Below, piece by piece: positions 35,102 through 39,232 of a stretch of DNA of 64,000 nucleotides. Origin of the DNA: Piromyces finnis finn (lineage: Eukaryota > Fungi > Neocallimastigomycota); contig MCFH01000002.1 in NCBI GenBank assembly GCA_002104945.1, positions 1,240,001 through 1,304,000 of the forward strand, read 5' to 3'. A program made the translations under genes and the position numbers. Within the stretch, counting starts at the first letter, position 1, and the number at the start of each line of letters is the position of its first letter. The notes under the pieces are model-generated. The model saw nothing but the letters and a program-made list of their open reading frames with translations, was not told the DNA's origin and made no database searches.

Positions 35102-36358
35102 ATGCAAGCAGATATTGAAGAATTAAGAGACATAAGAAACTCTTATTTCAAAAATAATACTTATCAAGAAAATAAAAGAAACAATACATATAACTACGAA
35201 AGAAATGGAAGAAATAGCAGATATTCCTATAGCAATAATAGTTACAATGATAACTTTGATGATAATAAAGAAGAAAACATTGAATTTATACCTAAAACTA
35301 TTAGAAAATATAATTTAATATATTGTATCATATTTTTATACTTTATATATTCTATTATATCTAATTCAATGATATGTGGTATCATTGTATTAAATGTAAT
35401 AGTATGTATATTATGGAAAATAGCTATATATAATAAGCAAAAATACTATGATGATGAATTATTAATATTCATGAACAATAATTTTACTGTCTCATGGAAT
35501 AATTTAGTTAATAAAAAAAGATATTGGGTCCTCATTACTTCAGTATTTTCACATGAAAGTATTATTCATTTGGCAAACAATATGATTACATTTTATTATA
35601 TTGCATTTTCAGTAAGTATTAAAAAAAAAGTATAACAATAAAGAATTGAAAAGGAAAAAATAATAAAGTATAGCAATAAGGTGTTAAAAAAATAAAATTT
35701 AAATTACGTTAAACAATTATCCTAATTAACTAATAATAAATTATAATAATTGAACTATTTTATTTTATATTAACGTGCTTTCTAGTTAATAAACCATATT
35801 GGGAAAAAAAGGTTTATAATAGCTTATTTATTATCAGGAATTGGCTCTTCCTATTTTCATGCTCTTTTCTATCATATGATTGTTCCAAAATTAAAGAGAA
35901 ACTACAATAACCTTTATTTGTTTAATTTATTTTATTCCTCATCCTCATCTATTGAAGATTCATATGATGATGTTTCAAGTCTCGGTGCTTCAGGCGCCAT
36001 TACAGGTATTGACACAATATTTTCCTGTCTATTTCCGACAAGTACTGTCATCTATTATGATTTAGAATTACCTTCATGGCTATATATGATAGTATTTATG
36101 GTTGTAGATATTTATCGTTCTATTACACTAACTAACGGTGATATTGATACCATCGGTCATGTTGGAGGAGGTAAATATTCATATAATATACTCTTATTTA
36201 AATATACAATAATTCTTAAATTATAATATTTAATTACTAATTTTTTTTTTTGTTTATATATATCTATATACTTATTATTTCTTTTAGGAATTGTTGGCTA
36301 TATTTATTATTCTTATAATTTAAAAAAAAATAGAAAAAGACGTTTTATCTATAATTAA
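35102..36358 (+). CDS. PARL-derived rhomboid protease, copy B, lacking the long N-terminal extension; 3 exons
   Basis: YWVLITSVFSH, HLANNM, LGASG, GHVGG; same two intron positions as the 15708-17403 gene; last exon GIVGYIYYSYNLKKNRKRRFIYN, stop 36356-36358. Confidence 0.85.
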
Positions 36359-36517
36359 AATAGAATTATATAATTTATAAAAAATACATTGATTTTAAAT
36401 TTTAAACCTATACAAATGATATTATATCTGATCTTTTAAAAATTTTTTTTTTTTTTTTTTTTTGAATTAGTTAATATAGAATTAATATTTAATAAAAACT
36501 ACCTTTTTTAATACCTA

Positions 36518-36658
36518 ATTATTATTATTATTATTATTATTATTATTATTATTATTATTATTATTATTATTATTATTATTATTATTATTATTATTATTAT
36601 TATTATTATTATTATTATTATTATTATTATTATTATTATTATTATTATTATTATTATT
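36518..36658. repeat. (ATT)n microsatellite, about 47 units, at the edge of the recent duplication
   Basis: Direct reading; the paralogous shorter array lies at about 39606-39678. Confidence 0.95.
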
Positions 36659-37342
36659 TATTGTACTTCTTTTTTAAAATATATATATATAATATTACGA
36701 AATTAAGAAACTTTAAAGTTAATAAATTACAATATGATATATATAAATTTTAAATATCTTTTATAATTATTATTATCATCCAAAACTTGTTTTGTATTTT
36801 TAAATTATTTATCTATCGAATACATTTAATATAAATAATAATTATAAATATTTCTTATATTGAATATTGATATAAATAATAATAAAAAATAATTGTAAAG
36901 AAAGGCTAAATTAACCCCTAATTATAAATTAGGGCCATGTATGAAATTGAAAAGGCATTTAAATGTTCGGATAATTTAGTTCTTGAATAAGCTGGATCAT
37001 ATATTAAAAAGTCGGAACTCTTTAAAGTTTTATAATCACCGGTATAACCATAAACGGCAACCCAATGCTGATTACCAGATGTGTTTATAGCACCATATGG
37101 AACGATACGACCAGCTCTAAGAGAGTTCAAAACAATTTGTAAAGAAGGTGAATTTACGATTTTAAAACCTAAATCATTGAAACTAGAATGATAAGCACCA
37201 CAATTAGAAAATGCCATTTTTTTAGCGATATCGTAAGGAGTATTTAATTTATTTTGAATTCGATTAAGAGCCATAGTAATTGAAGTTATACAGCATCCAT
37301 ACTTTTTTATCGTACAACCAGGAGTATATTCATTTGAATAAT
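36659..37342. repeat. Near-identical duplicate of 39679-40362 (offset 3020 bp)
   Basis: By-eye alignment shows only 4 substitutions (36678, 36792, 37325, 37337) in about 685 bp. Confidence 0.9.
36918..37342 (-). pseudogene. 5'-truncated copy of the C39-like peptidase domain (no signal peptide, no SH3b domains)
   Basis: Almost identical to the 3' part of 39938-40858. The ORF-track start at 37460 is TTG in low-complexity DNA; the first in-frame ATG lies downstream of the catalytic Cys. Confidence 0.7.
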
Positions 37343-38076
37343 ATTTAGTATGATAAAGAATACTTTTAATAAAGTACAATAATTCTTTTTTATCATATAG
37401 ATTCTTATTATTATTTATTTTTTTAAAAAAAAAAAAAAGAAAAAGAACCTTGGAAAGCAATTCTAACTGATAACTATATTCAATGTAGTGTATAAAGGTA
37501 TTACTATATCATATGAAATATATGAAATAGTTACAAAAAAAAAAAAAAAAAAATAGAATAAACAATAATTATTCTATTTTATTATATAATGAAATTTTTG
37601 ATATTAATTATTATTAATAGTAAAATAAATAAATTTGAATAATTTAATGGCTTATTTATTCATTCTTTTAGTTTTAAAAACATTCTTCTTCTTTTTCTTT
37701 TTTTTTTTTTTTTTTTCTGTTATTTAAAAAATGTAAATGTATAAATGTGGGATTATCTATTTTTCTTTTAAAATTATTTATATAAATTCTATTAAACTTT
37801 TTTCTTTTTGGATATATTATTTTTATCCTCAAATTATTTACATTATAAAATTTTCTTTTTTTTTCTGTCAAGACAATAAAAACAAAAAAATTACCAATAA
37901 CTTTAATTTGAAAAATATTTTTTATAAAAGTCTAAAAAAAAAAAAAATAAAAAATTAAAATTATTTAAATAATTATTTTAAATTTTATGTTGAATTGAAT
38001 ATAAAATAAATAAAAATAATAAATAAATAAATAATAGTAATAACTAAATAAAACAACAATAATAAAAAGAATAAAA

Positions 38077-39232
38077 ATGCAACCAGATATTGAGGAATTA
38101 AGAGGCATAAGAAACTCGTATTTCAAAAATAATACTTATCAAAAAAATAAAAGAAATAATACATATAATTATGAGAAAAATGAAAGAAATAATGAATATT
38201 CCTATGACAATAGTAGGAATAATGATAGCTTTAATAACACTAATAGAAGAGCAACTAATGGTGTAATAGAAAAAATTGAGTTTATAATCAAAATTATTTT
38301 TAAAAAAAATATAAATGTGGTATATGGTATTATTGTATTAAATGTAATAGTACATATATTATGGGAAATTGCGAGCTATAATAAAGAAGAATTTTATGAT
38401 GAAGAATTATTAAGATTCATGAACAATCATTTTACTATTTCATGGAATAATTTAATAAAAAGAAAAAGATATTGGACTCTTATTACTTCAACATTTTCAC
38501 ATAAAAGTATTATTCATTTGACGAGTAATATGTCTACATTTTATTATTTTGCATTACCGGTAAGTATAAAAATAAATAAAAAAATAAAATAAAATAATTT
38601 GAATTATATTAAATAATTATTCCAATTACAATTAACGTAATTAACTAATATATTAATAAATTATAGTAATTGACTAAATTATTTTTTATTTTAACATGCT
38701 TTTAGGTAATAAATCGTATTGGAAAAAAAAGATTTTTAATGGCTTATTTTTTAGCAGGAATTGGTTCTTCCTATTCTCATGTCTTTTTCTATCATATAGT
38801 TGTCCCAAAATTAATTAAAAACTATAATAGAAATTACTTGTTTGATTTATTCTATTCCTCATATATGAAATATTCATATGATAATGTTTCAAGTCTTGGT
38901 GCTTCAGGTGCCATTACAGGTATTAATACAATATTTTCATGCCTATTTCCAACAAGACTTGTCTCCTATAATAATCGTTTAAGATTACCTTCATGGTTAT
39001 ATATGGTATTATTTATGGTTGGTGATTTCTATCGTTCTGTTACATTAACTAACGGTAATATTGATACTATTGGTCATGTTGGAGGAGGTAAATATATTCA
39101 TATAATATATTCTTATTCAAATATACAATAATTTTTAAATTTTAATATTTAATTACTTTAAATTTTTATATATTTTATTATCCCTTAATAGGAATTGTTG
39201 GTTATATTTACTATTTTTATAACCTTATTTAA
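38077..39232 (+). CDS. PARL-derived rhomboid protease, copy C, tandem paralog of copy B; 3 exons
   Basis: YWTLITSTFSH, HLTSNM, LGASG, GHVGG; same intron positions; stop 39230-39232. Confidence 0.87.

Follow-up and report, generated by a model that had tools for sequence, protein, structure and literature searches.

Here we describe two short rhomboid protease genes, B and C, which lie in tandem at positions 35102–39232 of a 64,000-nucleotide (nt) stretch of the anaerobic gut fungus Piromyces finnis (Neocallimastigomycota; assembly GCA_002104945.1, contig MCFH01000002.1, forward-strand positions 1,240,001 to 1,304,000), together with a full-length relative, gene A, at 15708–17403 on the reverse strand of the same stretch. 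We call this whole stretch the window (about 18% G+C) and use its numbering throughout; the full-length form and its orthologues are referred to as A-type, the short form as S-type. By locating splice sites in the sequence, we arrive at a three-exon model for each of the three genes. Gene A (exons 17403–16507, 16317–15933 and 15778–15708) encodes a Pcp1/PARL-like rhomboid of 450 amino acids (aa). Gene B, on the forward strand, consists of exon 1 (35102–35611), which carries the N-terminal motif, a low-complexity linker, a hydrophobic insert, transmembrane helix (TM) 1, the L1 loop and TM2; a phase 0, GT..AG intron 1 of 174 nt (35612–35785); exon 2 (35786–36170), running from TM3 to the start of TM6; a phase 1 intron 2 (36171–36287), predicted from A, C and orthologue mRNAs; and exon 3 (36288–36358), which supplies the remainder of TM6 and the C-terminus and whose GIVGYIYY is conserved with C and the orthologue mRNAs. 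The spliced model of B comes to 321 aa. Gene C (exons 38077–38559, 38706–39087 and 39192–39232, forward strand) yields a spliced model of 301 aa that is identical to the annotated P. finnis protein P0288. In both short genes exon 1 is an open reading frame ending at a GTAAGT donor, and intron 2 has the weaker donor GTAAAT.

The three genes share their architecture as well as their active site. Alignment places intron 1 (phase 0, after TM2) and intron 2 (phase 1, within GHVGG/G) at homologous positions in A, B and C, and the Pfam Rhomboid model (PF01694) matches all six of their exon-1 and exon-2 pieces at 23.8–44.3 bits (25.3 and 44.3 bits for exons 1 and 2 of B), above the gathering cut-off of 22.6. 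The catalytic GASG serine of TM4 and GHVGG histidine of TM6 are present in all three (Ser239 at 35990–35992 and His295 at 36158–36160 in B; Ser228 at 38904–38906 and His285 at 39075–39077 in C), as is the HxxxxHxxxN motif of TM2, which reads SHESIIHLANN in B and SHKSIIHLTSN in C. A-type and S-type cores are about 40–45% identical. A preliminary description of this DNA had proposed that B and C share both intron positions and the catalytic dyad with A and that they begin at about residue 155–160 of A, leaving its long N-terminal extension absent; the exon models and the alignment bear out both points. Indeed, the B and C N-termini align with A from residue ~158, over about 158–190, a stretch that includes the weak match originally remarked on, and the homology is stronger against a more distant A-type orthologue, whose IRESYFNN resembles the IRNSYFKNN of the short form.

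Two gene models are corrected by this work: for A the existing annotation gives a fragment of 237 aa, and for B there seems to be none. The NCBI model of gene A (BCR36DRAFT_274318, P0001) is labelled "partial", begins at TM1 and runs into intron 2; the long N-terminus and exon 3 of our model are backed by the orthologues P0003, P0005, P0006 and P0007, and in the mRNA contigs of P0003 the ATG is preceded by stops, 3 and 6 codons away. A search of database homologues of P0008, a Pecoramyces S-type protein, returned no B protein, though the length of B is within range. Comparable ends that look like intron read-through occur in other database models and transcript proteins of the family (P0001, P0284, P0286 and P0287 for intron 2, P0099 for intron 1), and intron retention may be common, or regulated, in this rhomboid family.

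A short start is convincing only if no upstream exon has been overlooked, and here transcript evidence is available. Parts of the stretch occur in four public sequencing runs, whose contigs were compared with 34000–36510. One contig of 1195 nt (X1) lies on 35044–35611 and then on 35786–36412, with exactly the predicted GT..AG joint between 35611 and 35786, and is therefore RNA-derived; B is thus transcribed, with intron 1 precisely removed, which answers for B the concern that the genes might be silent. Over the 58 nt that precede the B ATG this contig follows the genome without a break, defining a 5' untranslated region (UTR; 35044–35101) that contains an in-frame stop at 35063–35065, 13 codons before the start and with no intervening ATG. 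An S-type orthologue, P0285, is encoded by an uninterrupted 318-codon frame in five contigs of ~1.1 kb from different runs, with poly(A) 3' ends and an in-frame stop 35 codons upstream of the matching MQP... start. Furthermore, the start consensus M.P.I.ELR.IRNSY is found in 10 of 10 short-type sequences, and tblastn detects no relic of residues 1–160 of A in the DNA preceding B or C.

The notion that the short start is an annotation artefact, with a missed upstream exon supplying a presequence, can appeal to the frequency of introns in the P. finnis genome and to one P0285 contig, L021, which diverges from L022–L025 some 25 nt upstream of the orthologue ATG, so that 5' UTR structure may vary. 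We nonetheless consider it extremely improbable. Colinear B RNA with an upstream stop, four independent poly(A) mRNA contigs of the orthologue that likewise carry an upstream in-frame stop, conservation of the first 15 residues in ten sequences from four or more genera, and the absence of any relic of the A extension upstream of B and C by tblastn together mean that a missed upstream coding exon is essentially excluded for the short form; the RNA comparison called for in the preliminary description accordingly turned up no use of a presequence exon. As for L021 itself, its positions 540–651 and positions 14–123 of L022 have only the last ~25 nt before the ATG in common and differ upstream; L021 also contains an unrelated minus-strand open reading frame; it may be a chimera assembled across an A-run, or the orthologue may use an alternative 5' exon that is non-coding.

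Other gut fungi besides P. finnis have the short form. S-type proteins are present in Pecoramyces (P0008, P0284), Anaeromyces robustus (P0287) and Neocallimastix (P0289), plus several transcript contigs, so that at least four Neocallimastigomycota genera carry the form and, on this sequence evidence, the duplication that gave rise to it is older than the split of the sampled genera. The neofunctionalisation peculiar to this genome that had been suggested earlier does not hold; the S-type is an old paralogue. The split between B and C is recent: they are sisters, with a synonymous divergence (dS) of about 0.37. Three elements ahead of the rhomboid core are conserved in the S-type, namely its invariant N-terminal motif, a linker rich in Arg and Asn and, adjoining TM1, an amphipathic helix of basic character. 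The first of these has its counterpart by homology inside the A-type, in a juxtamembrane motif, an arrangement consistent with a DNA duplicate that was truncated at its 5' end and took up a new ATG.

Several lines of evidence address where this family comes from. An exhaustive profile search with the family core returned 12,919 proteins at E<=0.001, in which the anaerobic-fungal proteins are followed by chytrid, Zoopagomycota, Mortierellomycota, Glomeromycota and Basidiomycota homologues, listed mostly as "hypothetical protein". A profile search with the fungal homologues retrieves, alongside many proteins without a name, P0045, "related to PCP1 - mitochondrial serine protease", which is also a direct match of the family profile, and the Vanrija protein P0208, "Rhomboid protein 1, mitochondrial". 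Searched back against the P. finnis assembly (56.46 Mb, 232 contigs), P0208 matches only the A, B and C loci, and a search with B exon 2 gives these three loci and no others. About seven more rhomboid loci in the genome are detected by the Pfam model (contigs C165, C46 with two loci, C178, C188, C158 and C182), none of which is matched by B exon 2 or P0208 at E<=0.01; these loci are unrelated to the Pcp1-like trio and fit the expansion of S54 peptidases that has been described in anaerobic fungi (PMC8778642). A maximum-likelihood tree with bacterial rhomboids as the root joins A-type and S-type in one clade (100/100) nested among fungal Pcp1-like proteins, the anchors of that group being database names; within the clade, support is 99/94 for the A-type, 100/100 for the S-type and 100/100 for B and C as sisters, and the S-type stem (0.71) is three times longer than that of the A-type (0.22). 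The named relatives, the reverse genome search and the tree placement thus support the Pcp1/PARL-type lineage, as opposed to secretory rhomboids, as the source of A, B and C, in agreement with the PARL ancestry first proposed for B and C. The ESM Atlas gave only generic "rhomboid domain" clusters, without subfamily information. It is also worth recording that a 554-aa homologue predicted in the chytrid Polyrhizophydium stewartii (P0009) has two Pcp1-like rhomboid domains, both complete; either the gene model has fused tandem duplicates or the double rhomboid is real.

Structural prediction agrees with the motifs. The AlphaFold model of C, built from a 43-sequence alignment, has a predicted local distance difference test score (pLDDT) of 84.4 and a predicted template-modelling score (pTM) of 0.75, and contains six TM helices, an L1 region and an amphipathic helix at residues 61–74; in a Foldseek search of the PDB with this model the top 34 matches are GlpG, at target-normalised TM-scores of 0.64–0.71. 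A sequence search of the PDB with the family profile gave no match at E<=0.001. On the strength of the model, the short rhomboids are predicted to be six-helix, GlpG-fold proteins; their catalytic apparatus is complete, and we infer that they are active intramembrane serine proteases. Organellar rhomboids have been described with a "1+6" topology, in which an extra N-terminal transmembrane helix precedes the six-helix core (PMC12615303). Hydropathy reveals no hydrophobic segment before TM1 in A, C, the A-type orthologues or the named fungal relatives, and in the AlphaFold model of the A-type protein P0003 residues 1–215 are for the most part disordered; three short helices occur there, and no membrane helix precedes TM1. 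The "1+6" arrangement is therefore lacking from A, C and the A-type orthologues by hydropathy, and from the models of C and P0003, and its absence may be a trait of a wider fungal clade.

The chemistry of the N-termini separates the two forms. S-type proteins, B and C included, have 3–4 acidic residues among their first 20, the first of them at position 4–6. Gene A encodes no acidic residue in its first 33 residues, its A-type orthologues none in the first 33–67, and the A-type together with nearly all other fungal homologues checked none in the first 29–142, the exception being a Pseudozyma protein with an acidic residue at position 3. Judged by residue composition, neither B and C nor any other S-type protein has an organellar presequence; the composition of the A-type extension is compatible with a presequence, which is not proof of one. 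Nearer the membrane the two forms are alike, with a basic flank before TM1 and an acidic flank after it in both, which suggests the same membrane orientation. The region before TM1 is net basic in nearly all S-type proteins, its last 25 residues holding 5–9 lysines or arginines (3 in B).

The two tandem copies have not evolved alike. Relative-rate tests with six S-type outgroups count 34–51 amino-acid changes unique to B against 9–17 unique to C (p<0.003), so that B changes amino acids at 3–4 times the rate of C. By codon parsimony with an orthologue mRNA as outgroup, the branch ratio of nonsynonymous to synonymous changes (pN/pS) is 0.72 for B and 0.40 for C, a difference that is not significant on its own (Fisher p=0.2). 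B has lost most of the basic helix before TM1 and has gained a hydrophobic insertion of 16 codons (35315–35362, residues 72–87) that is a gap in C and all other short-type proteins and that the RNA contig carries without differences; by hydropathy, insert and TM1 together make a 44-residue hydrophobic stretch, and the insert may add a seventh helix. Intron 2 of B is unspliced in all three contigs, RNA or DNA, that reach it (X1, X2 and X4), including the one in which intron 1 is spliced, whereas the orthologue mRNAs do splice intron 2; its retention would replace the end of TM6.

These features could mean that B, and perhaps C along with it, is degenerating and serves no separate function, frame and dyad persisting only because the decay is recent. 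Such a reading has in its favour the fast amino-acid change and the raised pN/pS of B, the lost helix and low-complexity insertion, the retained intron in three of three contigs, and the lack of a B protein model among the homologues of P0008. Set against it, the open frames of 170 and 128 codons are not chance survivors at 18% G+C, B is transcribed with intron 1 precisely spliced, and, of 64 columns in which the other family members do not vary, B agrees with them in 58, four of its six changes being also altered in C or conservative (V/L, Y/F). C, moreover, is clearly constrained, has an annotated model and has orthologues among the conserved genes of other genera, and the pair as a whole is therefore not decaying. 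We regard decay as improbable, and infer instead that C is the conserved working copy and B a relaxed or diverging, fast-evolving one.

The duplicated unit, of ~3 kb, extends beyond the rhomboids. Copy 1 (35084–37342, forward strand) and copy 2 (38059–40362) each comprise a rhomboid and the 3' part of a convergent SH3b-C39 peptidase gene, and blastn aligns them over 2.4 kb at 80% identity. The rhomboid part is 80–86% identical (its sub-blocks 82–86%) and the block 36619–36918 / 39639–39938 is 99% identical; over the larger block 36619–37342 versus 39639–40362, which covers the 3' part of the peptidase and downstream DNA, the copies are 99–100% identical. This unevenness suggests recent gene conversion, a second partial duplication or assembly collapse. 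The upstream peptidase copy (36918–37460, reverse strand) is truncated and lacks SH3 domains, and each rhomboid copy is followed by a long (TAT)n microsatellite (36518–36658 and 39609–39680). Linkage of rhomboid and SH3b-C39 peptidase in another species found no support, the open reading frame upstream of the orthologue in L021 being unrelated.

Bringing these observations together, we take the origin, the age and the true start of the short form to be shown: it stems from a truncated A-type duplication in the ancestor of the gut fungi, and B and C are its tandem duplicates. That ancestor duplicated an organellar Pcp1/PARL-like rhomboid (A-type) at the DNA level, and the duplicate, without the first ~160–220 codons, took a new start codon directly before a juxtamembrane motif that is also in the parent; a later tandem duplication of the short form produced B and C. 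Taken as a whole, with the topology and destination that follow, our explanation is somewhat more likely than not. Basic residues in front of TM1 and acidic ones behind it suggest that the N-terminus lies on the cis (cytosol- or matrix-like) side. The short form would probably no longer enter the hydrogenosome by the presequence route, and its hydrophobic TM1 could act as a signal anchor that delivers it to endoplasmic reticulum (ER) or secretory-pathway membranes, and to new substrates. This relocation through TM1 is the destination we prefer, at about an even chance. The wider proposition, that a PARL-type lineage left the organelle and that its S-type paralogue, conserved through the history of the phylum, works in ER, secretory or plasma membranes on new substrates, is more tentative and in our estimate falls a little short of even.

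The main competitor is that the short rhomboids are still hydrogenosomal inner-membrane proteases, imported by means of internal signals and working beside the A-type enzyme, for example with another substrate range or regulation; we think this possible, if rather unlikely. Polytopic organellar proteins can use internal signals, and candidates for such signals would be the arginine-rich linker and the basic amphipathic helix before TM1: the net basic character of this region in nearly all S-type proteins and the conserved amphipathic helix predicted at residues 61–74 of C suit such a role, and the juxtamembrane motif common to A-type and S-type suggests a shared partner or environment. Import is disfavoured by the extreme N-terminus, which is acidic and invariant, unlike organellar signals, and by the long S-type stem (0.71 versus 0.22), as would be expected after a change of environment; we know of no case in which a PARL-type rhomboid is imported without a presequence. 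Several points nevertheless weigh against our preferred explanation as a whole. The TM1 hydrophobicity of S-type proteins (1.7–2.6) overlaps that of other fungal Pcp1-like proteins (1.2–2.3), so ER and organelle are not told apart by it, and we rejected TM1 hydrophobicity as a discriminator. The arginine-rich region behind the acidic N-terminal cap could itself be an internal organellar signal. The PARL anchors are names given in databases and not characterised proteins, with yeast Pcp1 and human PARL outside the tree. Transcription of C is taken from its annotated model and from the share of sequence words present in the sequencing runs (no contigs encoding P0288 were found, records from its own genome seeming to lie outside the searched set), and the pN/pS contrast between B and C carries the limit given above.

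Work on PARL/Pcp1 proteases has treated them as guardians of mitochondrial dynamics and quality control that are present in single copy, and their known substrates belong to aerobic mitochondria. Here, a hydrogenosome-bearing organism keeps the full-length enzyme and, like its whole phylum, a truncated sister as well, whose catalytic residues are intact and which has an invariant N-terminal motif of its own. This raises the questions of what a PARL-type protease cleaves in a hydrogenosome, and of whether such a protease can be redeployed elsewhere or imported without a presequence. The substrates documented for PARL and Pcp1 include Mgm1, Ccp1, PINK1 and others (PMC12615303); these aerobic-mitochondrial substrates (Mgm1, Ccp1, PINK1) may be absent from hydrogenosomes. 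Should relocation be true, the S-type would be the first PARL-type protease documented to have moved into another compartment, a move possibly tied to the conversion of mitochondrion to hydrogenosome. We found no literature linking rhomboids, PARL-type included, with fungal hydrogenosomes; a proteome of the Caecomyces hydrogenosome fraction has been published, and its text does not mention rhomboids (PMC13556243). The S54 expansion in Neocallimastigomycota was reported without subfamily detail (PMC8778642), and the S-type provides a concrete subfamily behind it.

Compared with known systems, the trio stands closest to yeast Pcp1/Rbd1 and human PARL (MEROPS S54): all three genes have their nearest sequence relatives among the fungal proteins of that group, two of these proteins being so named by their sources, and the GxSG serine, the TM6 histidine and the HxxxxHxxxN of TM2 are kept in all three. 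They depart from Pcp1/PARL in having three copies instead of the usual one, in the absence of a presequence-like N-terminus from B and C, and in lacking, in A, B and C alike, the extra N-terminal helix of the "1+6" topology (PMC12615303), the additional hydrophobic segment of B being of uncertain status. With secretory rhomboids (Rbd2, RHBDL), among which the other rhomboid loci of the genome are counted, the short form has in common its active-site motifs and the lack of an organellar presequence, but the two are not close relatives. The six-helix fold modelled for C is that of E. coli and H. influenzae GlpG, from which it differs in sequence (only 13–20% identity) and in the lack of a GlpG-type cytoplasmic domain. 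Finally, the S-type resembles gene A and the other A-type proteins in intron positions and phases, core and juxtamembrane motif; the A-type (406–509 aa) is set apart by about 160–220 extra N-terminal residues, mostly disordered in the model, and the S-type by an invariant start of its own and by the greater length of the amphipathic helix ahead of TM1.

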